Shown here: piece after piece, positions 17,767-41,393 of the stretch
How the letters are laid out: each line of letters starts with the position of its first letter
Numbering within the stretch: position 1 is the stretch's first letter
Assembly (NCBI GenBank): GCA_010909165.1
Contig: MU008183.1
Coordinates: 682,001-746,000, forward strand
Reading direction: 5' to 3'
DNA: 64,000 nucleotides
DNA from: Anthoceros angustus
Taxonomy: Eukaryota; Plantae; Anthocerotophyta
The notes under the pieces: generated by a model
Told to the model about the DNA's origin: nothing
Seen by the model: the letters and a program-made list of their open reading frames with translations, nothing else
Databases searched by the model: none
Translations under genes and position numbers: made by a program

Positions 17767-17772
17767 GTTGCG
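17767..17772. repeat. Left target-site duplication GTTGCG
   Basis: Identical 6-mer immediately flanks both TIRs (17767-17772 and 41388-41393). Confidence 0.95.
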
Positions 17773-17799
17773 TATGGAATACCGATCTCGTCACACGGG
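17773..17799 (+). repeat. Left terminal inverted repeat TATGGAATACCGATCTCGTCACACGGG
   Basis: Exact reverse complement of 41361-41387. Confidence 0.97.
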
Positions 17800-18384
17800 A
17801 GTCTGTGTGTGACTTTCTTTCTTTTCGGTGTACGCTACGAGGATATGCCACAGAATCTTTTCGATACTCACGTATAATACACGTATAATACGTGCCACAT
17901 CAGCTTCACGGGGTTCGTACGCGGGGAAAAAACATTCTATCACACGTTCATCGGCCTGGTGTTCCGATGGTGTCATACAGATGTTTTTTTGATGACGGTG
18001 TTAGGGTTTTCATCGGGTCTACACACAAACATGGCGGGCAACACATACACGTGAACTTTTGTTCGCAGGTATGGCCCGCGTTCGCCGAGAAACTGCCTGC
18101 AAATCCTCCGCTTACACATGCTGCTTTCACTATATATGCAGGAAGGACAGGATGTGGGAGCACCCACGCTTCGTGTGCTTGCCTACTAACATGCTTGTGT
18201 TGTGCTTGCGGTTGGATGTATGGGACCGCAGAAGATGATCGTAACTTCACCTTTCAAACCGAACATGCCAAAAACAAAGGTAATGCATTATGATCCGAAC
18301 ATGCTTCACACTATCCCTCCTCAACCTCATCAAACAGGCAATGTCACTGGCCCTACAAATCCACTTCCCCTACTGACACGCGAA

Positions 18385-21300
18385 TCGCCAGATGCTGCTC
18401 AACCAAAAACATCCGCATAGTCTGCGCCACACCTCATGGTGGAGCGCCACAACAAAAACACCTCCCTACGCCACGGCCGGAAGAGCCTCGAGCAGTCCTC
18501 CATCCTCTTGTGCTCCGAACTTGGCTCCTCCTCCGCACTGCTCGCCTGTGCCGCCTCCGTGGAGGGGCCGAATGTCCTCCGCACCGGACATGGGAGGTGC
18601 ACCCGATTGTGCCATGGCAGGCTGTGCACCACCCCTCGTGAGGTTGGGGAGGTGTTCATCCCCAGACCAATGGGAAGGGGGACCCCTAAACCGGAAGGCG
18701 TGGATGGGTCGAGAGGGTGGCTGTCCACCACCAAGAACTGCACTTGCACATTGGCCCGATGGCATGGAGGATGCGCCATTGCCGCTCATGTATTCCATGA
18801 ACGCAGCCGCAGCGGCATTTCCCATCGGCCGCGTTGTCGGCCCGGCCGCCGAGTCCGTCCATCACTCCCTCCATGTCGGTGCGGGACCTCGAGGTTGCGC
18901 ACCTTCTCCACCACTTCAAGAAGGAGGCCGATGTCATGGCGCGGCCGATTGCAATCGCATTGACTTCGCCACATACCATACTCCCGAGCTCCATTGAGCC
19001 GGATGCCCCACCTTGTTGCGGTGCTCAAGTGGCCCCTCCCACCGTGCTGGCCCCATTCACGCCTCGGCGGCACCGGGTTCGCCCGACTCCGCCTTGCTTC
19101 TCGCCCCACCTCCTCCGCCGCCTGCCTCGCTCACGCACCTCTTCCTCTTCCGGTGCCGCCGGGCTGCCTCGAGCTCAACGATGAGCTCGGCGCCTCTTCT
19201 CTGCCGCCTCCTCGCCTCCAGCCAGCGCCGCCTGCTCGATCTTCCGACGACGCCCCACCAGAGATAGCGGATGCGAAGTTCCTGCTGTCAGATGACCTCA
19301 GAGGGCCTCGGTCTGCCCACTCTGGCCCACACCGCAAACCCAACTGCATATATGAGTACTGCATGGCAAAGTTCACCACTTGCAACCAAGATTACGAGGC
19401 ATGACAATGACAATCGAACCCACCAAAGATTGTCAAACACATTGCGCCACGGCGGATTGTGCGTGATCACTTACCATCTGAGTCTTCCGATTGTTGTCCG
19501 GCCGCGCCTCGCCCTTCTGCTCGCAGAACCCCCACGCCCATCGTCAGTCACTGTGGGCGCCTCCTCCTCCGCTTCTCTCCACTCACCGAAGCGCCCGACG
19601 GCTCCTTCCTACGGAGCCGCTTGCCCCACCATCCTCACGCCTCGCCCCACCTCCTCCGCCCCACGGGCACGCCCGAGAAGGAGGCGCAAGGGATGCCCGG
19701 TCCTCCGCCCGCATGCGCCTGTTTGCCCGCCTTTGGCGCAACCACATGGGTTTTCAGCCGCGTGCAGGCATGGTCCTACGCCTGAAGGTCGCTGCAGCCG
19801 CCGCCTCGAGCAGTCCTCCATCCTCACGCCTCCATCGCAGCCGCCGCTCGCCTGTGGCCGCCTCCATCGCAGCCGCCGCCCGCCCCACCATCCTCACGCC
19901 TCCTCCGCCCGCCCCACGCCTCCTCCTCCGCCCCACCGGTGCTGGCCCCATTCACGCCTCCTCCGCCTCCGCCTCAGCCGCCGCATGCCGCTCAACCAAA
20001 AACATCCGCATAGTCTGCGCCACACCTCATGGTGGAGCGCCACAACAAAAACACCTCCCTACGCCACGGCCGGAAGAGCCTCGAGCAGTCCTCCATCCTC
20101 TTGTGCTCCGAACTTGGCTCCTCCTCCGCCGCTCGCCTGTGGCCGCCTCCGTGGAGGGGCCGAATGTCCCTCCGCACCGGACATGGGAGGTGCACCCGAC
20201 AGCATGGCAGGCGGCAGTGCACCACTGCCCTCGTGAGGTTGGGGAGGTGTTCATCCCGGCACCAATGGGAAGGGGGACCGGAACCGGAAGGCGTGGCCGG
20301 GGACAGCTGTCGAGAGGGTGCCCCACCACCAAAGAACCGCACTTGCACATTGGCCCGATGGCATGGAGGATGCGGCCATTCGTTTCAGAGTTTCCATGAA
20401 CGCAGCAGCGGCATTTCCCATCGGCCGCGTTGTCGGCCCGGCCGTCGAGTCCGTCCATCACTCCTCCATGTCGCAAGTGGACCTCGAGGTTGCGCACCTT
20501 CTCCACCACTTCAAGAAGGAGGCCGATGGCGCCTGGCTGATGGCTGCATTGATTGACTTCGCCGCTGCTACCATACTCCCGAGCTCCATTGAGCCGGATT
20601 GCCCCACCTTGTTGCGGCCTTGGGCGGTGGCCCCTCCCACCGGTGCTGGCCCCATTCACGCCTCCTCCGGCACGGGGTTCGCCTCCGCACTCCGCCTTGC
20701 ATCTTGGCTCGCCCCACGGGGCCCGCCTGATCGCTAGGTCCGCCACTGCTCGGCCGCACCTCTTCCTCTTCCGGTGCCGCCACGCTGCCGCCTCGAGCTC
20801 AACGATGAGCTCGGCCAGCTTTCTCTCGCCTTGCCGCCTCCTCCGCCTCAGCCGCCGCCAGCCTCCGCTCGCCGCAGCCGCCGCCTGCTCGATCTTCCGA
20901 CGACGCCCACGCCCCAGAGTAGCGGATGCGAACGAAGTTCCTGCTGGCTGAGATGACCCCGTAGGGCCTCGGTCTCGCCCACTGGCCCACACCGCAAACC
21001 CAACTCGCGGACATATGAGTACTGTGCATGGCAAAGTTCACCACTTGCAACCAAGATTACGAGGCATGACAATGACAATCGAACCCACCAGCATTGTCAA
21101 ACACATTGCGCCACGGATTGTGCGTGATCACTTACCATCGAGTCTTCCGATTGTTGTCCGCCGCCTCGCCTTCGCTCGCAACCCCACGCCTCCATCGCCG
21201 TCCGGCGCCTCCTCTCCCTCCTGGTCGTTCTCCTCCACTCTCACCGGAAGCGCCTCCTCCTGAGCCGCTTGCCCCACCATCCTCACTGCCCGTCCACCTC

Positions 21301-22480
21301 CTCCGCCGCCGCCCCACGGCACGCCTCGACAGGCGGATGCCCGGTCCTCCGCCCGCATGCGCCTCCTCCGCCCCACCGGTGCTGGCCCCATTCACGCCTC
21401 CAAGCACCGGGTTCGCCTCCGCCCGCCGTGAAGCGATTGCCCGCCGCCGGCCGCCTCGAGCTCAACGATGAGCTCGGCCGCACCCTCCATCGCAGCCGCC
21501 GCCGCCGCCACCGCCTCCACGCCACCGCCTGCTGCCGCCTCCATCGCAGCCGCCGCCCCACGCCGGGCCGCATGCACCGCCGCCGCCGCCACCGCCTCGC
21601 CGCAGCCCAGACCATCCGCATGCAATCGCCCTCACCGCTTCTCCGTGTTTGCTGCAGTGTCATCTCCGCATACAGCTGGGTCGAAAGGCACCTCAGCCGC
21701 CGCTTGTTGGGATCGCCTCAGCCGCCGCCACCGCCTCCACGCCGCCACGCCGCCACCGCATCGCAGCCTTCGACCGAGCCCCTCCGCCCGCCATGCCTCG
21801 GCCGGGGCCGCCTTCAAGCATTGCCCGCCACGTCAGCAAGCTCGTGGCGCTCGACCGCCTCCAACTGTGGTACAAGCTCCGACTCTATGTTTTAAAAAGT
21901 CCAAGAAATTTCCTTCCACTAATTTGATAGAAAGCAATTGATCTTGAGCATATAGCCTAAATGTGCGCTGCTAGGTATGTAGAGGCCATATGATGAGGAT
22001 CCATCTTGAGCCACATCATGATTTGGCCCAAAGGGGTCACCGAACACCCTTCCTACATCTGACTCGCAAGAAGGCCACATGATGAGGATCCATCCGAGCA
22101 CATCGGATTTGGCCCACCGGCCGCCGGCCGGGCCCCTTCCTACATCGACCTCCAGCAAGAAGGCCACATGTGATGAGGATCCATCTTCGCCACACTGGGT
22201 CGCGCTGACATGACTGGCCCATGCCTCGGGGCAGGCCGCTGCCTCCACGCCACCGCCGCTCTGCCGCCGCCGGAGCAGTGAAGCGATTGCCCGCCCGCCG
22301 CCGGCCATCGCCATTTCCTCATCGCCGCCACCGCCGGCCGGTGCGCCCATAGTGCCCCCGCCCGCCATGCCTTCCAAGGCGCCTCCTCCTCCGCCCCGGC
22401 TACCGACATGGGTGTGTCGAGCTCCATGTCTTCCACCGCCGCCGCCGCCCATATCGCAAAACGCCTATGCTCGTGAGCTT
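18385..22480 (-). other. Transposon cargo unit A: GC-rich, internally repeated, coding-like, unidentified
   Basis: An approximately 1.6-kb module occurs twice (about 18390-19980 and 19985-21470) plus shorter ccgcc-rich repeats. Overlapping ORFs on both strands; G-rich strand is minus, so the strand call is inference. Confidence 0.4.
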
Positions 22481-22829: not shown

Positions 22830-24640
22830 GCCTTGCATGCCTATAAATAGGAAGAAAAGTCCTTCGATTTGGACCAATGTCACATGTGCATTGCCTATGG
22901 ATGGCATCCACATGGTATGTATGCATGATGGCTGGTTGTCATGCATCCGAACATTTGTACCTAGATGTCGTGCCATGGCACAATCCATGTATGTGCACCG
23001 TCATGCATGTCGGAAGGGTACCATGACATATAAAGGTCACGTGCGGTATAGAAGACATAAAAATCAAAACCCAAGGAAAAGGTGCCACGACACGATCTAC
23101 GTAGACATGGTCACATGCATCACTGTCAACGGGCATCATGCATGTCGGAAGGGTACCATGACACATATAAAGGTCACGTGCGGTATAGAGAAGACATAAA
23201 AATCAAAACCCAAGGAAAAGGTGCCCACGACACGATCTACGTAGACATGGTCACATGCATCACCGTCAACCGCATCATGCATACATACCATGTGCATGTG
23301 CATCGTGATATATGTTCGACGGTACTCGACACATACATACGCCAACGAATCTATATACAAAAGACCTAAAAATCAAAACCCAAGGAAAATGTGCACATGG
23401 AAAGCACATGGTATGCATGCATGTAGGATGGATGGTTGACATGTGAAGTATGTGAACATGTATACCTAGATGCTCGTCATGGGCACCTTTTCCATCTATG
23501 TGCATCGTGATGCATGTTCGGCAGTGGTACTATGACACATATATAGGTCGATCTATATTCAAACTACGTAAACACCATAACCCAAGGAAAAGGCGAGTAC
23601 GTTCTTGGTGCATGAATATCAATTGTTCAAGGCCAAGGACAAGTGGGATTACAAATATACCTAACTGCCTACCATCGACTGTGAGGTGGCACTCCATCAA
23701 CAGTTCCCGGTTTTTTTTGCCTATATATGTGGGCTACCCAACCATGGACTACCAACTACACGCTACTTGCCTATCCCTGCCCTACCTGCCTATATATAGG
23801 AAGAAACGTCCTTGGCCTTTGGACCACGTCCTGTGGTGTATGTGAACATGTCTACCTAGATGCTGTGTCATGGCACAATCAACCTATGTGCATCGCGATG
23901 TTTGTAAGGCACAGTACTACGGCACATATATAGGTCACCGCACCTATATAGAAAATACCTGAAAATCATAAACCAAGGAAAAGGGCTAGTAGGTTGTTAA
24001 CTGCATAAATATCATTTGTTCAAAGGCCAAGGAGAAGTAGGACTCTAAATAGATCTAGTGCCTACCATCGTCTGAGGTGGTGCTTCATCGAGAGTCCCGG
24101 TGGTTTTGCCTATATGTGGGCTACCCAACCTATGATTCTTCGATTGTACATGTTTGTCATAAAGGATAGGCAGCCATACGTCCCTTCTTTTCTCTTTTCC
24201 CTCTTCTCACCTTTGGGAACCGCATTGTCTAGTGGGAGCGACGTGCGGTTGTCGCAATGGGCGCCCTATGTACCGCAATGGTCACTAAGCGGTCGCAATG
24301 GTCGATAGGTACTTGCTTTCATTTGGTGATTCTCGGTTTGGTCCAAAGGCCAAGGTCTTCCTTCCATTCATTGATTGACATATTGGTGCAAAGGCCAAGG
24401 AGTTTTGTTCCCTTCATTGCCAATGTGAAAGCTCCAAAGGCCAATGAGTATTTTCCCTTTCATGACGCCGGGATGGTCCAAAGGGAAGGCCTTGTCTTCG
24501 TATATATAGGCGTGAGGATAGGCAAGTACCGTGTAGTTGGGAAATGGATTTTCTTCCTACACTTGAATCGGACCTTACATTCGGACCATTCGTCAATCCA
24601 GAGTACATTTTAGTCCTTGGCCTTTGGGCGTCAACGGAAA
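22830..24640. repeat. Left internal minisatellite/foldback arm (about 140-200 bp units)
   Basis: Units such as catgcatgtcggaagggtaccatgac...ccaaggaaaaggtgcc recur (gatctacgtagacatgg at 23094 and 23234); local inverted pairs 23212-23300/23400-23492 and 23751-23800/24500-24540. Confidence 0.85.
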
Positions 24641-24651
24641 AATCATGTCAT

Positions 24652-24727: not shown

Positions 24728-24849
24728 CGCCATGATCTGACATGAAAACGAAACACCGTTGTGCTTTGGACCTCGACCACTACAGTGTGCAAATTATTAG
24801 GCTTTGGACCGATAAATCATCGCGACTGCCCTTGGTTTGCGAAACACCA

Positions 24850-27800
24850 AACTTATGGAGGAGTATAAAGTGCCCTTTGCTACCGCCATTCCACAACCAC
24901 TCTTCCACTCGCGATCGCGCCATTGCTATTATGAGCAGCGCCGCCATCGCCACCCGAGCAAGAGCTATGCCTCCGGTGATTGCGGCGCCGCAATAAATGC
25001 ACCTCCTTTGGAGGCCATTCCTGCGCCTCCCGCCACCGATCGCCGCCCGCCTCCACCGCATTCAAGGACCTTCCTCCCACCGCATAAGGCACCGCAACGG
25101 ATGGTGTGCGCGTGCGAGTGGGCTCACCATACCGATGATGCACCAAAGCGCCTTCCTCCGCATCCGCAGATGCACTGCATCCCCGTCTTCCACACGCTTC
25201 AAACTCCTCGGCGTCATGCCCAAGACCTCACCGGCCGGAATGCGTGGCCCAAACCGCCTGTCTCATCCGAGCACCGCACTGGAACCGCAGCCGACCGCAC
25301 TTCCACGCCGCACACTTCTGCTTGTCTTCTTCCGCCGTCAGCTCGCATCCGATGTACAAGAAGAACTTTGAGCTGTCCACCTCGGATTGTCGCAATGACA
25401 ACAACCTTGCTCGGGCCGCACCACCCTCGCAGCCGCCATGCGTGCACGCTCCATGGAAGACCTTCCGCCTCAAAACCTCACCGCTGCACCTCTTTCCATT
25501 TCCCCAATGTGGTTGTCGCAGCCGCAGCCGATTGGAACCTCCGGATGCACTTCCGCTCCGCCATTCGACCGCCCGCAAATGCCACCGCCAACCCTACGGT
25601 TTCCGTATTATTGCGCCCGACCTTGTTTACATCCATTCTCAATTGGTGACGGAAAGCAATCACGTGAGGCCGTCTTTCTGCTGTGGTGCCGCTTTCGAGA
25701 TCCGCCATCGCAAACCAAGAAGTGAGTGCGGACAGTCAAAGTCTCTTCACATTAGTGCCCTCTTGCGGGGCGGGACAAACACAACCGAAAACCACTTGCC
25801 TCTCTAATGAAACGCAGTCCGACTCGAGGCCGGCCTTTCAAGCCGCCCCATACACGGAGTTCATGCGGATGGCTTCGCCACCCGCGTGGCCATCACGAGC
25901 TTGAGACATAGAGCGGGAGAGTGCGGAGCACGTCCTCCGAGTGCCCAAATGCCCGAGGGGAACTTGCCCGACCACCATTGGCACCGCTTCCGAAGTAAAC
26001 TCGCCCGTGATGAAGGTGAGCGCGCTCTATCGCCGAATGACATCTCTCGACGATTTCACGAACATTTCTCAACCGCGTGCCCTCGAATCTCACTCCGAGA
26101 ACGCTCGCCTGCATCCATGCGTGGCGTTGAAGAACTTGGTGACACTCTCAAACGTGCACTCCCTAGACACTCCAACATGGCCCTCTTGTCCGGTGTGCAC
26201 CACATGCCGGAACCCTCTCCCACCCACCCGCCAACGCGTGCACCCGGTGAATAAAAGCTGGTCACCTTCTTCCGACGCGCCACCGCCGCCGGACATGCGA
26301 GGGCTTGGTCGGCCACATGCTTGAAAAATCCGGAGCCTGCGCCATCGGACCAACGGCCGATGAAATCGCAGCCGCCCTCTTCGCCCGCCGAGCCGCTTCT
26401 TCTTGGAGGATGGCCATGAGTGGGTGGGTTGTCAACATATCCGTCTTAAAAGCCCTCTTCAACGCCTCCTCTCTGTGCCCGCATCCTTCCACTCCTTGTG
26501 CACGCCATCCTTTTGGCTCCCTAGTGCGTGCGCGAGTGTGGCAAATGTCATGGGACGACTCACCTCAATGCCATTTGACAGCAGCATGTAGAGCAGGTGG
26601 CCGAAGAACATGGCCTGCACAAGGAGGCATCTGCCGTCGTCAGCGCACCTGCACATTTTGCATCAATTAACAGCCAAATATCTTACCATGCTGCGCTGTA
26701 GGGGGTCGGATGCACTCCTGTGGCTGATGTGGTAATGTGTAGCACCGGCAGCAACGTTGCGTTCGAACACGCCGTCCACAAATGACGGCGACTCCCAGAA
26801 TTGCTTCCAGGCCTCGCTGATGCACCGTCGTAGGCCCGCCTGCGTCCACTGTTCCAACCTCGTGGACTACATCACCACCGCCCCTGCACTGTGCGATCGC
26901 ACTCTAAACGGTGGAAAGGTCCCTCCCGCCGGGAAATTGTCGAGCACCATGCCCGCCTCAACCCGCAATCACCAAAGCCGCTGCCAACCCCATCGCCGTG
27001 CCCACTGCAATAATGGCATCTTCGCACTCACCGAGGGTTAGGATGTCCTCGAATCGCCGCTCCCGCTCCGCTCGGACGGCATACATGAGCCTTCTCGGTC
27101 ATCGCAAACCGTGATCGCAGCGGCGCATCGGCGCTTCCGCCGCCGGACATGCGAGGGCTTGGTCGGCCACATGCTTGAAAAATCCGGAGCCTGCGCCATC
27201 GGACCAACGGCCGATGAAATCGCAGCCGCCCTCTTCGCCCGCCGAGCCGCTTCTTCTTGGAGGATGGCCATGAGTGGGTGGCTTGTCAACATATCCGTCT
27301 TAAAAGCCCTCTTCAACGCCCTCGTGCCCGCATCCTTCCACTCCTTGTGCACGCCCTTTTGGCTCCCTAGTGGCGAGTGTGGCAAATGTCATGGGACGAC
27401 TCACCTCAATGCCATTTGCCACAAAGATGTAGTGTGGTCAAGAACATGGCTCGCACAAGGAGGCATCTGCCCGACCGCACATTTTGCATCAATTGATGCC
27501 ATATATCTTACCATGTCACGTAGGGGGTCGGATGCACTCACGATGTGGTAATGTGTAGCACCGCCGAACGCTATGCTCAACACGCCCACAAATGACGGCG
27601 ACTCCTGCATTGCTTCCAGCCTCGCCGATGATGCACCGTCGTAGGCCCGCCCGCCCATGCTCCAACCTCACATCACCACCGCCCCTGCACTGTGCAAGAT
27701 CGCACTCTAAACGGTGGAAAGGTCCCTCCCCGCGAAATTGTCATCAGCTTGTTGGCACTCCATGCCCGCCTCAACCCGCAATCACCAAAGCCGCGCGTTA

Positions 27801-30800
27801 ACCCCATCGCCGTGCCCCAGCAATAATGGCATCTTGCACTCACCGGAGGGTTAGGATGTCCTCGAATCGCCGCCTCCGCCCGCTCGGACGGCATACGAGC
27901 CTTCATTACCGCAAACCGTGATCGCGGCATCGCGCCCGCCGACGCTGTGCCGGCCGCTTTCTCCGCCTCCGCCGCCTGAAGCGACCCACCGGCGGTGGCC
28001 GCGTGCGCCGGAGCATCTCCTCCTCATCCATCGCGAACCTCAAGTTGGTGCTGCTGTCCGTGCAACTCTTCCGCCGTCATGGAGCGAAGGTCTAGTCGGT
28101 CGTCCATGTCCTCGAGAAGGCGGACCAGCCCGGGGAGACGCCGCGGCGAAGAACCCCTCGGATGGTGGTGGCGGTCGAACATTTCCGGCCCATGCCTTGG
28201 ACCATCTGGATGCAAAGCGAGCCCTTCCGCCGAAGTTCGGCTCTGCGCTGTCCACGAGATGTTGCCTTGCAAGCGCAGCCCGCTGCATCTGCCGGGCCCG
28301 CCATTCCCGCCTTCTCCGCAAGTGACCCAAAATTTCAAGAAAAGAAGCTCCTCCGCGATGGCTCGCCGCCCGCCGACGCCCGCCGCCTTCCACTGCGGTG
28401 GTGTGTGCCGGAGCTCTTCCACAACTAAGAAGGTCCGCTTGCCATGCCGGAGAGCCTCCTCCCGCCTCCGCGCGAGACGCCCATCAACGCACGGCACGCG
28501 CGCCGCCCGCGGGACTTCGTGGCGCCCGCCCACGGCAGGCTCAGGCTGGCTGTTGGCCTTGAGGGAGAGGAAATTGTGCGCCCTCCCCACATGTCCCGAG
28601 GCGGGTGGGATGCGGGTGCCTCCAAGGTCGGGATGCCGGACGACGGCGTTGTTGAACTCTTCCTCCGAGCGCGCCACGACCACCGCTGCCACCGCCCGCT
28701 ATCCCTCCCATCCTGACATCCACTTCTTCCTCCTCAACCCGCCATACACCTCCGGCGGGCGACGCCCGCCGCCTTCTCCGCACCGCAGAGGTGTAAATTG
28801 CGCGTCACGTCCCGGATGTACAGATTTGCATCGCCAAGACTGTGACGCTGCCGCTGGGGGAAATTGACAGAATGTCGCCGATACACGGACTTGTGTGCGC
28901 GACGAATCATGCATGGACCACAAAGCGCCCGGCCCTGCATCGCCACCGGCTTGTCGAATAGAGCCTCGCACGCCATCCTTTTGGCTCCCTAGTGCGCGCG
29001 AGTGTGGCAAATGTCATGGGACGACTCACCTCAATGCCATTTGCCGAAAGATGTAGAGCGGTGGTCAAGAACATGGCTCGCACAAGGAGGCATCTCGCTG
29101 CCGTCACACACATTTTGCATCAATTGATGCCATATATCTTACCATGTACTGTAGGGGGTCGGATGCACTCGTGGCGATGTGGTAATGTGTAGCACCGCCA
29201 ACGCTATGCTCAACACGCCCACAAATGACGGCGACTCCTGCACTGCTTCCAGCCTCGCCGATGCACCGTCGTAGGCCCGCCCACTGTTTCCAACCTCGTG
29301 GACTACATCACCAGCCCGTGCAGTGCGATCGCACTCTAAAGCGGTGGAAAGGTCCCTCCCCAGCGAAATTGTCGAGCTTGTTGGCACTCCATGCCCGCCT
29401 CAACCCGCAATCACCAAAGCCGGCGTGCAACCCCATCGGGCCCCATTGCAATAATGGCATCTTCGCACTCACCGGAGGTTAGGATGTCCTCGAATCGCCG
29501 CTCCCCGCCCGTTCGGACGGCATACATGAGCCTTCTGTCATCGAAACCCGCATCGCAGGCGGCATCGCGGCGCTTCCGCCGCCGGAATGCCAAGCGCGCG
29601 TGCCGTTCTTTCTCCGCCGCCTGCCTCTCCGCCTTCTCGCCTGCCGCCTGAAGCGACCCACATGCGGTGGCTGCGGTGCAGTCGGAGCATCTCGTCCTCA
29701 TCCATCGCGAACCTCAAGTTGGTGCTGTTCGCGTGTTCTGCAACTCTTCCGCCGTCATGGAGCGAAGGTCTAGTCGGTCGTCCATGTCCTCGAGAAGGCG
29801 CACCAGCCCGGCAGCTGGAGACGCACTGCGTGCGAAGAACCCCTGGATGGTGGCAGTGTCGAACATTTCCAGCCCGTCCATGCCTTGGACCATCTGGATG
29901 CAGGCGAGCCCTTCCGCCGAGTTCGTGCCTGCGCCCGTGTCCACGAGATGTTGCAGCCTTGCAAGCGCAGCCGCCCCCGCATCTGTTTCACAATCTGCCA
30001 TTCCTGCCTTCTCCTGCAAGTGACCCAAAATTTCGAAGAAAAGAAGCTCCTCCGCGATGGCTCGCCGGCCGCACGCCGCCTTCTCCGCCTTCCACTGCGG
30101 TGGTGTGCCGAGCTCTTCCACAACTAAGAAGGTCCGCCATGCCGCCGGAGAGCCTCCTCCGCCTCGCCGCGAGACGCCCATCAACGGCGCACGCTGCGGG
30201 CGCCCCGCTGGGGACGTGGCGCCCGCCCACGGGCAGCACCAGCCGCTGGCCTTGAGGGAGAGGAAAGCGTCCTCCCCACATGTCCCGAGGGTCGGCAGTG
30301 GGATGCGGGTGCCTCAAGGTCGGGGATGGACGACGGCGTTGTTGAACTCTTCCTCGAGCGCCACGACCACCGCCGCCACGCCCGCTATCCCTCCCATCCT
30401 GACATCCACTTCTTCCTCCTCCCAACCCCGCCCCACCTCCGGCGGGCGACGCCCGCCGCCTCGCATCTCCGCACCGCAGAGGTGTAAATTGCCGCCCCGA
30501 TGTACAAGATTTGCATCACCAAGACTTGCCGCTGGGGGAAATTGACAGAATGTCGGATACACCGGACTTGTGTGCGCGACGCGGCGATGCGGACCACAAA
30601 GCGCCCGGCCCTGCATCGCCACCAGCTTGTCGAATAGAGCCTCGCACCTCCGCACCGCAGAGGTGTAAATTGCGTCACGTCCCGGATGTACAGATTTGCA
30701 TCACCACAAGACTCGGACCTCTGCGCGGGGAAATTGACAGAATGTCGCCGATACACGGACTTGTGTGCGGACGCAACGGCATGCGGACCACAGCCCGTCC

Positions 30801-32560
30801 TGACCGCCACCGGCTTGTCGAATAGAGCCTCGCACGCATCAACAATGGTCGCACACCGCCTTCCGCGAACGGCGTCGCGCCCCCACCGCATGCCCGAGGG
30901 CACCGTTAGCTCCACTGCGTGAGGTCGAGCGGACACGGACCGTCCCGATCGCCACCGGCTTGTCGAATAGAGCCTCGCATCAACACGCACACACCGTTCC
31001 TTGCGAACGGCGTCCTGTACGCCCCACCGCATGCCCGAGGGCACCGTTAGCTCCACTGCGTGAGGTCGAGCGCACACGAAGACAACCCGCCTTCTCCATC
31101 TCCCAAGTCGACCTTGGGAAAGCCTTGTCAGTACTTGTATCCGAGTTTTGTGCCAACGCCGCCTCCGCGCATCCCGACGGTGCTCCCGCTCTTTGCTTCT
31201 TCCGCGGGCCTATACCCGGCAGCCCGTGATTCCGCAGCTGCGTGAATGGGATTGTCCCAACGGCCGCAGGGAGGCGGCCTCGCCTCCTCCCGCCTCTCCT
31301 CCTCCCACCAATCTGGCGTGGCGCGGAATGCGAGACGATCCTCCCACCCATTCCCCGCCATATGTGGAAGGGCCGCCTGGGACGACCACGTTGAACCTCC
31401 GAGCTGCTCCGACGATGGCGGCTTGGCACGGGCGGCCCGGGTCATATCTGCACGCCGCGCCCACGCCAAGGGTCGCCGCGCCGGGCGCAATGACGCCGGC
31501 CCGCTGGGCGAACGCGCGATGGCGCGGCAGCCGACACGGCCGCCCATCCGCGAGGGCAGCCGACACGGCCGCCTCCATCCGCCCATCCGCGGATCGTCTT
31601 CTCCTTCGCGTGCCCAGCAAGAACTGTGTGCCCACAATTTCTTCTTCGTCTGCTGCCCGAGCGGGTTGAGAAGTGCAATGCTCACCGTGTCTTCCGCTAG
31701 ACGCCATGGAGCCTGTGTGCAAGATCCGCGCTGGCCTGATACCTTATGTCCACACCGCCACCGATGTGGCGCCTCGTGTGGGACGAGACGCGCATGTGCA
31801 AGGAGATCGATGGCGATGTCGCAAGCATTGCGCGGTGTTCGAAGGGGTTGCAGCCGGAAAGCTGAAATCATTGTCCATAATCCTCCGTATCCGCCCGACA
31901 TACTCGCACGCCGGCATGTGCGGTACATCGTTGAGTTACGAGGGGCCGGGCGCAAGTTTTGGCTCCGAAACATGATTGCTGCGTTGCGCTACCGCATTTC
32001 CTCAAGTTGCGCCCACGCCGCGCCCCATGCACGCGGCGCCACTCCACACCCTCATCGCGCTGCCACCGCACCACTCCCGGTTGTTGCAGAGGACATGACG
32101 TAGTGGGTCGCCGGCGTTTGACTTCCGCGGCGCCCGCCAAACATGCCGATGGCGCGGAGGGTCCATGGTTCCTTCCGCGTCACATGTGCGAAGATGCGGC
32201 ACAAACGTGTCGCACTAACATATTGGGTCCGATATGGTCCGAATATAGTGGGCCGATAGGCAAATGATGCGGTATCATCGCTGGCCCGAGCATTTGTGTC
32301 CGGACCGCACACCAATACCGACGCTCGAAGCAATTCATTGTGCCTCGGCTTATTCAAATGCCCTTCTCATCCGATGTCTATGGTCGTGCATTGCGCAGTC
32401 GACCGGCTATGCATTTATAAGGTATTTCGTAGGCGCGCCATGGTCTCGATCCGCTCATGAAGTCCATCCCATATTGCTTGCCATGAAATCCGTGAGCATG
32501 GCCCATATTGGCTCGCCAACGCAGCCATCACTTCACATTTTTCGATGGCATGGTTGCCCC
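24850..32560 (-). other. Transposon cargo unit B: frameshifted coding-like region with nested tandem duplications, unidentified
   Basis: Peptides recur across copies (GLVRLLEDMDDRLDLRSMTAEEL; RRFEDILTSGECEDAII; ALKRAFKTDMLTSHPLMAILQEEAARR). Modules at about 26305-27110, 27140-27900, 28975-29560 and at about 27930-28975, 29600-30640. Confidence 0.5.
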
Positions 32561-33199
32561 TTGGCCCTTCCGGCCTCATGGCTCGGAGATTTGTCTGTCA
32601 CTCCCACATCCCGACCCCATCCCGCCAAGACCGGTCCTCCCCCTTACCCGCCCGCCACGGACAGGGCCGCAGTGCCCGCACGCCATCCCGCAGGCACAGG
32701 CCGCAGGCCGCTGCGGAGCGCACCAAAGATGCCCCACCCGCACGGCCCGCCCCACCACCACAAACCGCCCCACGCTCAACCCCGCCCCAACCCACAAACC
32801 GCCCCACCGCTCAACCCCGCCCCAACCCGACCAACCCACCCCACCCAACAAACCAAAGAAGCGAAAATGCCGACCAACCAAAATGCCTAAACCGCAAATT
32901 TTCGAAAATGCATACAATGCCTTACATTGGTGAAATGCATAGCATGCGAAAAAGGCAATTGCGTTGAATGTGCAACCGGACGAGGTTGAATGTGCACTGA
33001 CAATAACGACCGCCATAGAACACAATGCACTTGCGTCAAACGAGGATGACGTTGGCTGCCTCGCAGCTCCCTCCTCGAATGACAATGACAATAATGAAGG
33101 AGGTGCATATTCATATGAACACATGAACAATGGTCCCTTGTGTCCAAGACCAAGGCAATCGCAATGCATTTGACCGAGTGGCCCCGATCAAGTTGGTTG

Positions 33200-34750
33200 C
33201 CTAACGCTCCCACTAGATCCCAAAGGTCAAGAGAGAAAGAAGCCAGTGCATGGTCAAGTATGGATGCCTTTCCATGCAAACAAACTTCTACAATCGAATA
33301 ATGAATGGGTAGGAAGCCACATATATAGACATGTTTATCGGTAGATGTCAAGACCAAGGAACAGGTTAATCACGTGCCACCTCACTTGGCCGGTAGGCAC
33401 TATAGGTCTATTTAAAACCCTACTTGTCCTTGGCCTTGAACAAATGATATGTATGCGATGTAACGCACCTTTTCATTGGGTTATGTTGTTCATGTATGTA
33501 TATATGTGTTCGCAACCCTATATCATTATGGTATGCCGTCACATGCATCACGATGCACATGGATTCATTGTGGCATGACACAACATCTACCTAGGCATGT
33601 TCACATACACAACATGCCAACCATACATGCATACACACCATGTGCATGCCATACATTCAATGCACCCTCATCACATGCACCACCCAAATCACATGGCATA
33701 TGGCAAGTGGTATGACAACAATGTTCGCTAAAGTCAAGACCAAGGAAACACATGCAAGGGTTGGACCGAGGCTCCCACCGAAATGCGGATCCCACAAGAC
33801 ATAAGAGAGAAAGAAGACAAGACCTTGTCTACTTCGCCTGAACCTAGGGTCAAGTATGGATGCTGCTCCATGCATACAAACTTCTACAATCGAATTATGA
33901 TTGGGAAGGAAGCCACATATATAGACATGTTCACGGTAGCGTATGCAAGCCCAAGGAACAGTTGAATCACGTGCCACCTCACGAGTCGAAACTTTGGGTT
34001 TATTTATTATCATACTTGTCCTTGGCCTCAACAAATGAATGCAATCGAACACTGGGTTTTTATTATCATACTTGTCATATACATGACGATCTAGGTAGAC
34101 ATGTTCACGCATCCGATTGCAACCATGCATCATGCATACATACCATGTGCATGCATGTGTTGTGGTGTTTAGGTTTTTCTATGTAGATGCGATGACCTAT
34201 ATATGTGTCATAGTACCGCGCCATATACATCTAGATAGATGGATTGCGCCATGACGATCTAGGTAGACATGTTCACGTGCATCCGATTGCAACCATGCAT
34301 CATGCATACATACCATGTGCATGCCATGTGGACCTTTTCCTTATGGTGTTTAGGTTTTTCTATGTAGATGCGATGACCTATATATGTGTCATAGTACCGC
34401 ATATACATGACGATGCGATAGATGGATTGCGCTATGACACAAAGATCTAGGTAGACATGTTCACGCAGCATCCATTGCAACCATGCATCATGCATACATA
34501 CCATGTGCATGTGTGGACCTTTTCCTTGGTGTTTAGGTTTTTCTATGTAGATGCGATGACCTATATGTGTCATAGTACCGCGCCATATAGACATGACGAT
34601 GCAGATAGATGGATTGCGCCATGACACAAAGATCTAGGTAGACATGTTCACGCATCACAAACCATGCATCATGCATACATACCATGTGCATGCCATGTGC
34701 ACCTTTTCCTTATGATTTGGTTTTTGTATATAGATTTGCGACCTCTTCCG
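33200..34750. repeat. Right internal minisatellite arm, mostly inverted relative to 22850-24260
   Basis: gatctaggtagacatgttcacg at 34088, 34256, 34444 and 34631 (periods 168, 188, 187); reverse complement of 33200-33440 matches 24010-24260. Confidence 0.85.
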
Positions 34751-35269
34751 TTGTCCGGCAGATATCAAAACCACATACCAGGAAGATGGATTGGTTGGAA
34801 ATGAAAATTGGGAGGTTGTGTATGGCGCCTCAAAGTGAAAGGGTTTGGTACATGTGCGAGCTACTCACGCCCACGCCACCAAAGGGAGGGGTTAGTGAAA
34901 TTAGGTGGAAGTGGCGATACCGCGGTGTTGGTTGGGTTTGAGCAGACGGCGCCCACCGCTGGTGATCGCCGGCGGTCGCAACCTGCGGAGAAGGGGGAAG
35001 GGACGGTTGCCGCGGTGGTCGGAAGGGAAACGCGGGTGCGCATTTACGTGCAAGGAAGGCGCGGCCGGGTGGCGGTGGGTGGAGTGCAACGCGCCCGACG
35101 CCTGTGCCGTGGAGGAGGATGAGGAACACAAGATCGCCGGGCGGCGATGAGCGAGGCGGCGCCTGTGGGTTGGTGTGTTCTCGGCCGGGCGGTTGCGCTT
35201 GAAGAGTGGAAGGTGGCCAGTGAGTAGGTAGTCGGAGCCCATGTCAGATGACCGCCGCAAATCACGGTG

Positions 35270-38200
35270 CGGATGCGCATGTTTGCGGTGTCCGGCGAGC
35301 ACGGCCTTGTGCGAGGGGCGCGTGGAAGGGCCGGGAGGAATGGGAGATGCAAAGCTCGCGAGTACATTCTGCGTGGCCTATGGTTCCCATCAACCATGGG
35401 AGCGTCCGAGTTCTTGGCATTTGTGGAGGACCATCAAAGCCGGTTCCGCGCATAGAGGGCTATCCAGAAACTTGCCGCAACGACTGCACCGCGAGGGACG
35501 ACCGGATGGAGTGGCGGTGGACAAATTATCGCGAGAGTGCCTACTGTGGAGTGCCACATTTTCATGCACCAAGTGTTCGGCTGGCCGCCGTCGGATGGAA
35601 GAGGTACCGGAAAGGAGAGCTGCCAAAAGCTGACGACCGCACCGGCGAGGGACGACCGGATGGAGTGGCGGTGGACAAATTATCGCGAGAGTGCATACCG
35701 TGGAGTGCCACATTTTCATGCACCAAGTGTTCGAGTTGGCGCCGGATGGAAGAGGTACCGGAAAGGAGAGCTGCCGAACGGACGACCTTAGGATTTGGTT
35801 TTCCGTGCACGCATCGAGTGCCACCGACCGTGGAGAGGTGGCCTATGAGGTATTATGAATTGGTTGATTTCGCGCGGTATGGAGAAATGGAATGGAATGA
35901 GAAGACGGAGCGTTGTTCCGGGATATCAACCGCGAGAGAACCATGTTCGAGTACTTGGGATGCGAGCGGGAAGGTAACCGTGCCGGCCGTGAAGGCACAA
36001 AATTGTAATGCGTTGCGGTTGGGAATGGCGTGATGCGGAGCACAGCCGATGGTGAACGCCAGCCGCAAGGGTGAGGCGGCGGCTTCGCATGGCTGCGACG
36101 GCCACGCCCGAGGGTAACCGCCGCTAAGTTGCGGATCGTTGTAAGGTGTGCGGCGTGCGCGATTGCACATTCAATGTTTGCTGAAAATGCACGGTGTGAA
36201 AACGAGAATCGCATGTGGCTCGCATGGCATCGCATTGCACACGACCGACGGAAGGGTGCGTGAAACATGCGCATATGCCGCAGCGCTATGATGCGGATGC
36301 GCGAATGGAGCGGGCGTAAAGGCGCCGCTGGGGATCTCGACGATCCCGAGGCCGCAAGTATACCTATGATTCCGTGCACATTCAATGCCCGCCATGATGG
36401 TGCGTTCGAAACGGGGAGGCGATGGAGGAGGAGGTGCGGTGCACGCGCCTGTGAAGGAGCCATGGCGACGACGGAGGAGGGAGGAGTGGGAGAGGCCATG
36501 GACAACCCGTGGTCGTCCGAACGGAAGGTGGAGTGGAAGTCACGCCGCGGTGGTGGATCAACCGATTGGCGCACCCACCTTGGGAGGGGCGGGACGTCGA
36601 TCTCGTGGAGGTGCACCACAAGTGGAGACAGGTGCTCACGCAGCGCGATGCCGCATCCGCGGTCACCATGAATTCTCAAACCTCGCTATTGATTGCGTGG
36701 TGGATTGCACAGCGGTCTCCATTGCCCACGGCCATGCTTGGGCGGCTCAAGGAGGCGTGACTCCGCCCACAACGAGCGACAGTACGAAGGGCTATGTGGC
36801 CTCCAAGGAAATGCTTTGCGCGGGCTCGTGAGCCTCACAACTCTTGTGTGTGCGTGGTATGATCCATTCGAGTTTGCGGCCGACAGTGAGAGCGTGGGCG
36901 TGGACGCGTGCCACCGCGCAGGACGATCGAGGCGGCGGTGGATGGTCGGGCGCCGCCGAGGAGAGCGCAATGCGGCGGAGGAAGGGGCGGCCGGGCAAGA
37001 TGATGCGCCGGCGACGGGCGATGCGCGGCCGACCGGAGGTTGTGGGCGAGGTCATCGAGCGGCGGTTTTGGCCGACCGTCCCCGCCGAACGCCTCGCCGG
37101 GCGCCAATGCGGGGATCGGCACATGCCGGACGGGCGGGGCGCGAGGAGTGGAAGCGACGGTGGCTCGCGAAGCCCGGGCGACGGAGCCGGTGTGGGAGTG
37201 GGAGTCCGCAAATCCACTCCACCGACTCCGCATGTGCGAGCGAGGCATGTACCGGGAGGGCGAGAAATGTGGCACGATGCTGGTCCGGGAAATGGGTACT
37301 CATGGTATTGGAGGTTCCATTGTCCGCAATGCACAAAGATTTCATTTTCGGTGGAGAGGATCGACAGGGCCTACCATTGAGGTCGGGTTGGAGGTGGAGT
37401 GAAGGTGCGGCATCATGCACGCCTTGGGCACGGAATGCGAACGCGCAAAGAATCGGCATGGCACGTTGGTGCCGTTGTGGATGCAATTCGAAGAGTGGAT
37501 TGCAATCTGCGTGCTCGACCATCGAGATAGGAACGCCACCGTGACCATGCTCGTGAGAAGTCAATGGAGGCTTCGTGGGAGTTTTCAACAGAGAAGGACG
37601 CCTTTTTCGCAATCACCGCTGCTCAAAGTGGAGGAAAGCAGTTGGATGGCACCCTATGGTCGCAGTGGAGGGAATGATAGCGGCGGATGTTCGCAATCGG
37701 AGAAGTGGAGTTGGAAGCTAGGTGAGGCGGTTGGGCGGAATGGGACCGGCGTCACATGTGCTCGTGGACCGGGCCAAAGCGGCATTGGAACATGCGTGAG
37801 GCTCGTTTGTCAGGTTGGGACATTGAGCATCCTCCTGTGGAGTTGGATCAACACAATTTTTGTGGGTCACGCTCATTGCCGTCGGTACAACAGACGGAGC
37901 ATTTCATATGTTACATGGACTCAATCGAACGAAGAGGGAGTATTCCAAACCTGGAAGCATGTGACCGATTATCGTGGCATGCCACACAATGGGGGTCGAC
38001 GGATACGCCCGATAGCCGGAAGATCCCATGCCTTTTGTTCGCACCGAGGACCGTCGTGGAACCCCCGCATTGAGGTAAGGCAGTGTTCTCGCTATTTGCC
38101 GGGTTTGCAAGCGAAGTCAAGAGTGAAGATAGGAGAGCGGGCCATCGAATTGTCGATGGCCTCCGAAAATGGGCGGTGGACGGCAAGTGTGTTTGCCGCA

Positions 38201-38300
38201 CGCCGTGAAGCGCCCATTCTAGATTGTTCACATACGACAGGTGTTTGGTGCGTGCGGGTTTGAAGTGTTGCCGGAGTGCACTTGTGGTCGCACTTCAAAC
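35270..38300 (+). other. Transposon cargo unit C: long frameshifted ORF(s) upstream of the transposase, unidentified
   Basis: Protein-like stretches across frames (EYILRGLWFPSTMGASEFLAFVEDHQ; RIVVRCAACAIAHSMF; CGIMHALGTECERAKNRHGTLVPLWMQFEEWIAICVLDH); about 153-bp internal duplication at 35480/35633. Confidence 0.4.
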
Positions 38301-38859
38301 AATGAATGAAATGCGAAACGAAAAGTAAACCGTGATAGCTACGGGCGCACCGTGAACTTGCCGGCGGCCTCTACCGCAGTGCACAGGAAACCCCCGCAAG
38401 CGCTTGAATCGGACCGTCCGGAACAAAAATCGGAGTGGCATACGCTAATACCGATCGAGCCGCCTGACGAAACCCTTGGCTGCGGACATGCCATTACTCG
38501 GGCGGAAAGTGTTAGGAGGATCGAAATCGCCTACTGCTCAGAGAGGTGCATTTGGGGTTTGAACTGGAGGAAGGCGATGGGGCAAGGAAAAGCGCCCATC
38601 AGGGCGGCGGCGCGAGGTCCGAGGGTGTTGAGGCCACCAAGTTCCACCTTGGCCATCACGTGGGGCAAAAAGCAGTGAAGGGTGCCCATGGACGCGGCGG
38701 CCTTCGCGGACGAAGGAGGAAGATGGTGGGCGCCAAAGACGGCCGCATCAGAGGTCATGGCGAAGCCCATCATCATGCGGACGGTGAAAACTTGTGCACC
38801 TGCGAGGAGCCGTGGGATGAGGGCCGGAAGGTGGAGATGAAGGATGCATAGGAGACGGG

Positions 38860-40805
38860 CGGGTGCGCGCGCCTTACACCGCAAACTGTATGATTTGGCG
38901 GCAAAGACTGGTGGAGACCATTGAAAGGCCTACCGACGGAGCTAGGCCGCAGCTTGAGCACGGTGACGAGGCTCTCGTGACGACACGGCATGGCGCGGGT
39001 GTATGGGAGGTTGTCCGTGGAGGAGGTGTGCACGATTGCCACGCACACACCCATCACCCAAGACGTGAACGCCGGAATACGATTCGTGCGTGCAGAAATC
39101 GGATGGAATCGAAATCCCAAGGAGGCAGGTCACGGAGGCGCTTGATGGCTGAGCACATGGCACGACGGCCGAAAGGCGCATCCGCTGGCCCAAGACACCA
39201 ATGCGACACCCATGTACATGTGGCATATGGATTGGGTGCGTGAGAGGAGGGGGGGCACATGTTCGCAGTTCGCGGCAGGGAAGGAAGGTGAGTTGTGACC
39301 GCAATCACCGACGGAGCTAGGCAGTTTGAGCACGGTGACGAGGCTCCTGCATCGGCACACGGCATGGCGCGGGGTGTATGGGAGGTTGTCCGTGGAGGAG
39401 GTGTGCACGCTGATTGCCACGCACACACCCATCACCCGGCACGGCGTGAATGCTGGAATACGATTCGTGCAGGCAGAGCTGCAACTGGATGGAATCGAAA
39501 TCCCTAGGAGGCAGGTCACGGAGGCGCTGCGTTTGATGCAGCCGGAGCACATGGCACGAGCCGATAAAGGCGATCCGCTGGCCCAAGACACCAATGCGAC
39601 ACCCATGTACATGTGGCATATGGATTGTAAGTGCGTGAGAGGAGGGGGGGTCGCGATGTTCGCAGTGTTCGCGGTGCAGGAAGAAGTGATTGCAGGAGTT
39701 GTGACCGCAATCACCGACGGTGCCTCGTGGTTGCCTTGTGCGCAATTTTATGACAAGACCAATTCTACTTGAGTGCACGGGGCCATAGATGGGGCAACCC
39801 ATTACGCCCCGTTGGTGCCGGAGGATAACAAGCGGGAACGACGATTTTCAACGCCTATGTGGAAGCAAGTGAGGAAGTTTGGGCATCCGCAGGATTTGGC
39901 CGACACGCAGCAGAGCACAACCTATAGAGGCGATATGAACCGAGCGAGGCCAAGGGCACATGGAAGCAACTTCATCCGCGCCCCTCTGCACAACTGTAAA
40001 AGTTAGGAGGTTGGTCTCCTTGTCCGCAGTGATACCGGTGAAGTCGTGAATGCGGATTGTTGCAGGATTGAGCATTTCGGTCCTTGGGAGAGAAGTGGGC
40101 ATTCCTCTACAAGGGTACATGATGGATATGGTGAGGAGCAATGAATCGACATCACCAACCTCGGCACATCCATTCCCCACGCGTGACCTTCATGCCCACG
40201 ATGAGGGCGGAGCTCGAGCGTTGGAGGTGTATGGAATAGGCACCGGTGCGGAAGATCGTGCCGATGTGGACATTCCCGCCATGTGCTCGCATCGCATTCC
40301 AAGAAGAAGGTCGACTACAAGGGTGGGTGCACACCCGCATATGGGGGTGAGGAGGACGATGGCGAGGAGTTCGATGTGGTGGCCTCAAGATGCACAAAAC
40401 GTGGCCCCCGAGATGCCACCACTCAGCGGCATAGAATTGCTGAGCGGGGTGAGCAACTGCAGGCTGCCTGTCCATTTATTTTGTCCAGTTAGATTGTGGA
40501 GGGGGAGGGCGATCGCGCCATTTGTGCACGGGAATCGAATCGATGGGCCATCATGGGTTGTGCAGGAACTGCAGATGGCGAGGGACAATGCATATGCAAA
40601 GGGATTGCAGGACATGGACTTCCTCCTGACATGTATCGGCCGACATGGCACTAACAACACTGCAGGAGTGCAGGAGCACAGGGACGATTGTTCAATACCT
40701 CCACCGGATTTGAGGTCAAGCCACCCGCGGGCGTGGACGGCCATCACGCCGCGTCTATGGTGCACGAGGTGTGAGGGGCGTGGCCCAGATTCGCTTCCGG
40801 AGTGA
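38860..40805 (+). pseudogene. IS3EU-like (IS3/IS481-related) DDE transposase, frameshifted as assembled; 5' part tandemly duplicated
   Basis: HTH-like ELGRSLSTVTRLL; YGRLSVEEV; GIRFVQAELQLDGIEIPRRQVTEALRLMQP; WHMD (39614-39625); HGAIDG (39776-39793); FGHP..D.AAEHN after a frameshift; HN (39989) then a probable intron and RIEHF (about 40064-40078); LERWR..WNRHR (40232-40246). Start and end are approximate. Confidence 0.85.
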
Positions 40806-41360
40806 GCTAGGTGTCGGAGAAAAGTGTTTTGTGCGCCACCATGACCGGGAGCGGTGATTTTGTGCGCTCACCATCACCGGGAGCGTGACAATTTGGATTT
40901 GTTTGTTCGCGCTTTGAGAGTTGAGCGGGTGGCTTTGTTGTGGTGGAATGTAAAGGCCGGTTGTGTGAAGATGGTGTGCGCCACCGCGAGGCCTATGGCT
41001 GGCCTCAGCGCACGACGCCGGATGGTCGCGATAGCCAGCGCGAGGCGCATGGCGCCGACGCTATCAGTACAGGCGATGCCGCCGCGCATATGTGCCCTTG
41101 TGCCTCCTCCACGCTATCTCCCATAAAGCCCGGTGACGGTATCGTGATGGCAAACGAATGGATGTCCGATGGCCCATGCCCTCACAGCGAAAACATTGTG
41201 TGTCACAACCACAAAAGATTCCTGACACAAACCACATTAGTGACGAGATCGGGACACGAGGGCAGGCGCCGACGACCGATGTCGTCAAGGAGACCAGAAG
41301 TTTTCCCGCCGTATGCGGCCGGAAAACTTCTTTGGTCACAATGGAAAAAAACCCTAAAGG

Positions 41361-41387
41361 CCCGTGTGACGAGATCGGTATTCCATA
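41361..41387 (-). repeat. Right terminal inverted repeat
   Basis: cccgtgtgacgagatcggtattccata; its core gtgacgagatcgg recurs subterminally at 41240-41252. Confidence 0.97.
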
Positions 41388-41393
41388 GTTGCG
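41388..41393. repeat. Right target-site duplication GTTGCG
   Basis: Matches 17767-17772. Confidence 0.95.

Follow-up and report, generated by a model that had tools for sequence, protein, structure and literature searches.

We report that a 64-kb window of the Anthoceros angustus genome (contig MU008183.1 of assembly GCA_010909165.1, positions 682,001 to 746,000 of the forward strand; positions below count from the first letter of this window) holds a DNA transposon of 23,615 bp with perfect terminal inverted repeats (TIRs), the remnant of a transposase gene towards its right end and some 20 kb of GC-rich, heavily duplicated DNA between its ends. Its termini, the length of its target-site duplication (TSD) and the transposase remnant support, at the level of sequence, its placement in the IS3EU/GingerRoot lineage. 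The features of the locus are collected in Table 1.

The left TIR of 27 bp (TATGGAATACCGATCTCGTCACACGGG, 17773-17799) recurs as a perfect reverse complement at 41361-41387, and the outer TIR edges span 23,615 bp (17773-41387) with ends that read TATGG...CCATA. Alignment of both ends showed that their similarity ceases at 27 bp. The hexamer GTTGCG abuts both TIRs externally (17767-17772 and 41388-41393), and the length of the TSD is exactly 6 bp, the next outward bases on both sides being unlike. With three or fewer mismatches allowed, the 27-mer occurs at the two TIR sites only in the 64-kb window, where no match is expected by chance (100 shuffles). Moreover, the 13-mer CCGATCTCGTCAC, located at 17782-17794 within the left TIR, has one further copy, which lies 110 bp inwards of the right end and likewise faces inwards. 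TIRs and duplication together support that 17773-41387 was inserted as one transposon unit. The earlier note on this DNA had claimed the TIRs (TAT..ATA), the 6-bp duplication, the length and an IS3EU-like identity; the first three are read from the sequence exactly as given there, and termini, TSD length and transposase remnant agree with the last. Two unrelated solo ends were considered and rejected: an exact 6-bp match by chance is expected about once in 4096, and the composition shifts at both ends. A paralogous empty site was not found within the 64-kb window.

Support from reads was sought in one DNA run (X1, with contigs summing to 98 Mb, i.e. a small genome) and one run labelled RNA (X2, "RNA?"), both from the same organism; X1 is possibly the sample behind the assembly, in which case the read support is not fully independent. 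An X1 contig at single-copy depth (12) covers 41360-41651, across the right end and into the flank, and is identical to the window throughout, the summed contig depth just inside the right end is 152 versus approximately 12 in the flank, and an X2 contig matches exactly up to 41387 and then continues with 255 letters of a different flank (TCGCAGACGCAG...). Given the crossing contig, the jump in depth and the other flank, the boundary at 41387 is genuine, and the sequence of the end occurs at other loci as well. The right end of the element is hence multicopy in the genome, and copies that have both ends in common may lie at several sites.

The transposase remnant spans approximately 39.3-40.3 kb on the forward strand. 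Direct Pfam scans of the open transposase pieces of the window gave no match even at E 10, and the homology therefore came via relatives only. In an exhaustive phmmer search of the whole library, the piece of 157 amino acids (aa) at 39299-39769 matched 13 proteins (best E 8.8e-12), most of which are short open reading frames (ORFs) in which the closing motif ...PM.LWH[MI]DC[EK] gives way to junk; to judge from the sequences, ORFs that end at the WH[MI]D motif carry the signature of a first exon read through its GT donor. On the contigs of the two best-scoring relatives (L001, on a 401-kb ENA contig, and L002 and L003, from Logan assemblies) the ORF just downstream scores PF24764 rva_4 ("Integrase core domain", E 5e-18), and a further ORF downstream covers the end of the rva_4 model. 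Splicing L002 as 398-890 / 1053-1318 / 1615-2280 gives an uninterrupted protein of 474 aa.

Exon 1 of the window (39365-39634) matched the first exons of L001 and L002 in tblastn searches (E 6e-17 and 8e-16, respectively), and these likewise end WHMD followed by GT. For exon 2, the piece 39773-40003 was the sole match to the exon-2 profile of the relatives among 1585 ORFs of the window (E 2e-4), and the two have HG.IDG..H, GHP, RARP and HN in common. The GT donors of the window after WHMD (39635) and after HN (39996) correspond to both L002 intron positions. Further matches of exon 1 are distant: the IS481 family model NF033577 was hit weakly (E 1.6e-4, 21 bits against a cut-off of 224 bits), the atlas neighbours of exon 1 are rva_4 clusters (score 0.95), and the atlas neighbours of the transposase piece carry rve/IS481. 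By eye, L002 is approximately 54% identical to the GingerRoot DDE query Sl-GR-005 (PMC6839031), with the common motifs KL..RIHG.ID.SSH, DK.ATTI, RVRSD.A.EH.LV.Q..ER and TGSS.HNQ.IE.FW. The superfamily assignment is regarded as sound; its basis is transposase homology and gene structure and not a computed tree. The earlier note had described an enclosed IS3-type DDE transposase; a homologous remnant is indeed present, in a decayed and not an intact state.

Other searches with the transposase were negative. The exon 2 profile had 0 matches among PDB sequences, a word-indexed protein search found no close relatives of exon 1, and no zinc-finger or chromodomain match was found in the element. The profile hidden Markov model of the relatives' exon 3 did not recover the exon 3 remnant of the window, and with this profile the C-terminal approximately 130 residues were undetectable. 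No convincing inverted ends with a duplication were found within 10 kb on either side of the transposases of L001, L008 and L009, and tblastx of the element against L001 returned nothing beyond transposase exon 1, which is why we conclude that no cargo is common to the two. The remnant is only approximately 27-44% identical to the relatives retrieved here, and we therefore treat the element as a separate family. The rva_4 transposase family with introns itself occurs in ENA assemblies and in JGI metagenome contigs (L001, L002-L007 and L008); the intron after WHMD is kept across relatives that are 32-43% identical, and the L002 gene is apparently intact.

Lesions in this copy were called by comparison with L002 (splice junctions are marked by a slash). 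A tandem duplication (38932-39314 / 39307-39720) covers exon 1 and part of intron 1, and its upstream copy is stop-ridden. The acceptor of intron 1, tag/CA TAT GAT AAA in L002, reads caat/TT TAT GAC AAG in the window and lacks the AG. In exon 2 the conserved YDKLAKWKFRIHG reads YDKTNST*VHG, with two codons deleted and a TGA at 39770-39772. A paralogue is represented by an X2 contig approximately 91% identical over 39907-39984; immediately upstream of 39907 it has TTTGGCCATCCCCAGCGGATTCGGTCGGAT (FGHPQRIRSD, continuing AAEHN), and its second-Asp motif is intact. The equivalent stretch of the window is FGHPQDLADTQQST, where a one-base loss and a later compensating shift (approximately 39893-39930) garble RxRSDxAAEH, the motif with the second catalytic Asp. 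The exon 2 donor is CAG/GT in L002 versus T/GT here, and joining exon 2 to the only available acceptor (gcag/GATTGAG) creates a TGA and leaves RIEHF, with the catalytic Glu, out of frame. A further exon 3 match lies in yet another frame and has a TAG within the WNNH motif, in an alignment that is itself weak (E 0.28). The catalytic triad is not intact: the first Asp is kept (MWHMD), the second-Asp motif is garbled and the Glu motif is out of frame. Because the triad is broken and exon 2 carries a TGA, this copy is non-autonomous, and its transposase gene reads as a pseudogene. A working enzyme is not supported, given the nonsense codon, the frameshifts, the lost splice acceptor and the exon duplication. 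As the paralogue contig shows, the same organism has a more intact copy, which is possibly transcribed.

The remainder of the element differs from its surroundings in composition. Its mean GC content is 58%, reaching 60-65% in three blocks, versus 48-51% in the flanks, and its CpG observed/expected ratio is approximately 1.0 versus approximately 0.7 outside; the ratio is 0.95-1.15 in the GC-rich blocks and 0.66-0.78 in the host flanks and in the element's satellite arms. Both GC and CpG observed/expected shift sharply at approximately 22.5, 24.8, 32.9 and 34.8 kb. The GC skew is negative over 18-34 kb and positive over 34-42 kb, with the sign flip near 34 kb. According to a self-comparison, internal repeats take up 11.3 kb (48%) of the element, among them the unit copies of block A (18386-19720 / 19979-21364, 83% identical). 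Duplicate pairs are 83-89% identical (12-17% divergence), with substitutions spread evenly over the three codon positions and many indels of 1-2 bp; given the flat codon-position counts and the frequent short indels, the duplicated segments have drifted without protein constraint. For the two satellite arms (22886-24240 and 33205-34736) neither sharp termini nor an edge duplication were found.

Genes were sought in the interior among 116 ORFs outside the transposase remnant, comprising stop-to-stop frames of at least 110 aa on both strands and frames of 100-109 aa on the likelier coding strand. None of the 116 has a credible Pfam match. Hits to ANKLE2_3rd, FinO_N, Harakiri, Dscam_C and DUF7211 (E 4e-4 to 0.04) fell below the cut-offs and were rejected as chance or low complexity. 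No Rfam family or tRNA was found in the interior, and the longest interior ORF, 20030-21037 on the reverse strand, has no homologue among 5.8 billion proteins. For a cargo ORF at 28027-28698 on the reverse strand the atlas recognition was 1112, typical of non-proteins; the transposase pieces gave 3224 and 3579. As tblastx of the element against the flanks of the window gave no match, no captured neighbouring gene is present. Overall, the interior of approximately 20 kb is probably non-coding. The earlier note had called the element cargo-laden, with about 20 kb of cargo, a description that does not fit DNA in which no gene is recognisable and nearly half is internal duplication or satellite.

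In 2019 GingerRoot was reported from Selaginella lepidophylla, and further lycophytes as well as bryophytes were found to have it (Cerbin et al. 2019, PMC6839031). The 77 intact copies of S. lepidophylla measure 3.9-12.9 kb; their inverted repeats are 100-150 bp long, their duplications 6 bp, and most of them end in TA..TA; 28.6% of the intact elements carry host gene fragments, and most such elements are without an identifiable DDE motif (PMC6839031). GingerRoot and Repbase IS3EU form one clade with 99% bootstrap, and both have TA..TA ends and 6-bp duplications (Kojima and Bao, PMC10045372). Fungal IS3EU families end TAYGG..CCRTA (PMC12730594). The idea in the earlier note that an IS3EU element is unusual in a land plant is at odds with this record (PMC6839031, PMC10045372).

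The element studied here combines a 6-bp TSD, TA...TA termini and DDE homology of the rva_4 type without an HHCC or GPY/F module. With GingerRoot of S. lepidophylla it has in common the TSD length, the 5'-TA...TA-3' termini with terminal inverted repeats, a homologous transposase with an N-terminal helix-turn-helix and no HHCC, a plant host, many defective copies, loss of the transposase accompanied by extra internal DNA, and insertion irrespective of genes. The published elements are, however, 3.9-12.9 kb long with repeats of 100-150 bp, as opposed to 23.6 kb and 27 bp here, and the passengers in them can be identified as host gene fragments (84-1,654 bp, approximately 48% GC), whereas the interior here amounts to approximately 20 kb that is unidentifiable, 58-63% GC, not CpG-depleted and heavily self-duplicated. 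With its 27-bp repeat and 23,615 bp it is a member of the superfamily outside the S. lepidophylla GingerRoot families as described.

Fungal IS3EU elements likewise have TA..TA termini, a 6-bp duplication and TAYGG..CCRTA ends (TATGG..CCATA here), group with GingerRoot (99% bootstrap) and include some multi-gene members; for one of them, Styx (7.9 kb), transposition with 6-bp duplications was observed directly. In contrast, their cargo is recognisable (TET/JBP, alpha-kinase) and their transposases are intact, while the present element has a plant host and a transposase gene with spliceosomal introns. The similarity to bacterial IS481/IS3 is distant and extends from the helix-turn-helix to the first Asp (NF033577, E 1.6e-4); the score of 21 versus 224 bits, the eukaryotic gene with introns, the TA..TA instead of TG..CA ends and a size approximately 20x larger set the element apart. 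Polintons/Mavericks resemble it in that they make 6-bp duplications, measure 15-25 kb and have an integrase-type enzyme; they differ in their termini and integrase family and in the polymerase and capsid modules that were not found here.

Taken together, our data make it probable that this cut-and-paste DNA transposon of the IS3EU/GingerRoot superfamily is non-autonomous and internally amplified and was mobilised in trans. In this lineage the DDE transposase combines an N-terminal helix-turn-helix with an rva_4 catalytic core, and it would bind the 27-bp TIRs and probably also the repeated 13-mer. It would excise the full 23.6 kb and insert it at a target cut with a 6-bp stagger, the repair of which would give the GTTGCG duplication. 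As the element's own transposase gene appears to be a pseudogene, the last move would have been in trans, with a more intact relative from the same genome as the source of the enzyme. The remaining 20 kb, GC-rich, not CpG-depleted and swollen by tandem and segmental duplications and by two inverted satellite arrays, would have been carried passively between the ends. Duplication after the insertion would predict several changes in the 66 bases of the ends and the duplication, and none is seen; decay and amplification of the interior are, on this comparison, most likely older than the last transposition, and mobilisation in trans would therefore again be implied. The recent insertion proposed in the earlier note is thus plausible for the last move, and the decay of the interior must predate that move.

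Several points weigh against this interpretation. The evidence for exon 3 is weak (E 0.28, with the exon-3 profile missing the remnant of the window), and the tie to published GingerRoot consists of an alignment by eye and Pfam rva_4 and not of a computed tree. The frameshifts could in part be errors of long-read assembly, the stretch 38400-39975 being without an independent contig; indel errors do not typically produce a TGA, in-frame codon deletions or a lost AG. Exon 1 could reach HGAIDG in frame through an AG at 39772-39773 and so bypass the TGA; this would cost approximately 11 conserved residues, and the garbled second-Asp motif and the lesions at the exon 2/3 junction and in exon 3 would remain. 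Furthermore, the interior is known from a single complete copy (17773-41387), and failure of domain searches is no proof of a non-coding interior, as lineage-specific genes with short exons escape them.

Another possibility, which we consider rather unlikely, is that an element of approximately 10-12 kb, i.e. of GingerRoot size, was inflated by one or more nested insertions of unrecognised repeats, for example 22.9-34.7 kb, in which case nesting and not cargo would account for the size. The two inverted arms of approximately 1.3 kb bracket approximately 9 kb, the sharp GC and CpG shifts given above coincide with such a layout, and removal of 22.9-34.7 kb leaves approximately 11.7 kb, inside the published size range. 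However, the arms are satellite arrays without sharp termini, a duplication at their outer edges was not found, and no transposase, reverse transcriptase or other transposon domain was found within the segment. Such a composite origin is compatible with trans-mobilisation of an amplified element and not exclusive of it.

It is improbable that the interior is true gene cargo, i.e. lineage-specific or fast-evolving proteins that benefit the element or the host. Cargo-carrying IS3EU elements are known in fungi (PMC12730594), GingerRoot has captured host gene fragments (PMC6839031), and the strand-asymmetric composition flips near 34 kb as converging transcription units would have it. Yet no credible domain, homologue or RNA family was found, the cargo ORF that was tested had low protein-likeness, and the duplicated segments show no purifying selection and differ by frameshifting indels. 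In addition, RNA contigs are near-absent on the examined part of the element, whereas the neighbouring gene is well covered. We give an equally small chance to a distinct, short-ended lineage of giant GingerRoot elements with an interior that is foreign or actively maintained (such as a module acquired horizontally or escaping methylation); the element would then be the plant equivalent of the giant transposons that carry cargo.

Still less likely is an autonomous giant element whose transposase is intact once spliced and which moves itself together with 20 kb of cargo. MWHMD, HGAIDG, GHP, RARP, HN and RIEHF are all recognisable, GT donors stand at conserved intron positions, TIRs and duplication are perfect, and some frameshifts might be assembly errors; but the TGA lies within the conserved YDK..IHG segment, the homologous acceptor is without AG, the second-Asp segment is out of frame relative to the paralogue of the same organism, the canonical exon 2/exon 3 splice creates a TGA, exon 3 shifts frame and holds a stop, and the C-terminal residues mentioned above are undetectable. 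Finally, it is hardly credible that the locus belongs to another class of mobile element that makes 6-bp duplications, be it Polinton/Maverick, Ginger2/TDD or a long terminal repeat (LTR) retrotransposon. The duplication fits Polintons, as does a size of 15-25 kb, and all of these classes have an integrase-like DDE enzyme (PMC6839031). However, searches for signals of polymerase B, capsid, ATPase, protease, reverse transcriptase and HHCC/chromodomain were negative, the termini read TA..TA and neither AG..TC nor TG..CA, the ends are inverted 27-mers and not direct LTRs, and the catalytic exon of the relatives scores rva_4, with no rve match reported for that exon. Polinton/Maverick, Ginger and LTR elements were all rejected because termini and repeat geometry do not fit and marker proteins were not found. 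In particular, the 116 ORFs gave no Pfam match to the protein-primed DNA polymerase B, the capsid proteins, the packaging ATPase or the protease of Polinton/Maverick, whose termini are AG..TC. Ginger1 and Ginger2-TDD have TG..CA termini (and, in Ginger1, a Gypsy-like integrase with YPYY/HHCC/GPY motifs), and the N-terminus here is helix-turn-helix and not HHCC.

Two converging genes flank the element, which lies in the spacer of approximately 1 kb between them. The peroxidase exon to its left ends approximately 550 bp before the insertion site, which places the element in the 3' spacer of the peroxidase gene, and a peroxidase of this kind fits a plant host. The introns of the gene to its right are 42374-42489, 42722-42843, approximately 42998-43112 and 43197-43338 (CT..AC on the forward strand). 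In the right flank, 42143-42339 reaches a summed contig depth of 221 versus approximately 12 next to it, and contigs have loose ends at 42129 and 42186; the stretch looks like a small high-copy repeat, possibly a miniature inverted-repeat transposable element. Further out, the flanks contain tandem duplications at 4856-6059 / 6051-7256 (99.6%), 50604-52609 / 52601-54610 (98.8%) and 54082-55404 / 55397-56713 (99.4%), of which the set at 50604-56713 includes an oxidoreductase NAD-binding ORF (50596-51759; PF00175, E 9e-24); these near-identical duplications are either very recent or an assembly artefact. Older segmental duplications of 88-94% lie to the right of the element (44375-46105 versus 46893-48744 and 41547-42129 versus 46170-46766), together with short tandem arrays near 45991-46105 and 48629-48838.

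Table 1. Features of the transposon locus (positions in the 64-kb window)
Feature	Position	Strand	Remarks
Last (C-terminal) exon of a class III-type plant peroxidase	16704-17225	+	PF00141, E 2e-22
Target-site duplication GTTGCG, left	17767-17772	.	Identical hexamer directly outside both ends
Left TIR, 27 bp	17773-17799	+	Begins TATGG; holds 13-mer CCGATCTCGTCAC at 17782-17794
GC-rich block A	18386-21557	.	63% GC, C-rich on + strand; tandem unit of ~1.6 kb plus partial third copy
Left satellite arm	22886-24240	.	Units of ~139-181 bp, 47% GC; inverted versus 33205-34736, 64-85% identity
GC-rich block B	24800-32900	.	62% GC, CpG observed/expected 1.07; nested tandem duplications 26277-31078
Right satellite arm	33205-34736	.	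181-bp unit, 3.6 copies at 34088-34735; inverted versus left arm
GC-rich block C	34800-38800	.	60% GC, G-rich on + strand; small tandem duplication 35480-35787
Upstream, heavily decayed tandem duplicate of transposase exon 1	38932-39314	+	85% identical to 39307-39720; stops, frameshifts
Transposase exon 1 remnant	39299-39634	+	Helix-turn-helix to first catalytic Asp (MWHMD), then GTAAGT donor
Transposase exon 2 remnant	39747-39995	+	YDK..HGAIDG..GHP..RARP..HN; match to exon-2 profile of relatives, E 2e-4
Putative transposase exon 3 remnant	40064-40330	+	RIEHF (catalytic Glu motif) directly after AG; weak, E 0.28 in 2.3-kb search
Subterminal exact copy of CCGATCTCGTCAC	41240-41252	-	Candidate transposase-binding site
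Right TIR, 27 bp	41361-41387	-	Ends CCATA; multicopy/single-copy boundary and loose contig end at 41387
Target-site duplication GTTGCG, right	41388-41393	.	Identical hexamer outside both ends
Expressed spliced gene just right of the element	41847-44134	-	RNA contigs

An IS3EU-type element in a lycophyte, the host that the earlier note had in mind, is not new, and neither is a defective one that bears passengers; the novelty lies in the size (published maximum 12.9 kb), the short inverted ends, the odd composition and the distant transposase. The known host range of the superfamily is unchanged, and functional cargo is not supported by the evidence here. For transposon annotation, the element adds a family with 27-bp ends unlike the long-repeat families of S. 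lepidophylla (100-150 bp). Our data suggest that the load which IS3EU/GingerRoot ends can move in a plant genome is at least 23.6 kb, approximately twice the largest published GingerRoot, and that this move was made by a defective copy dependent on the enzyme of a relative, which bears on estimates of the amount of DNA that such elements can shuttle.

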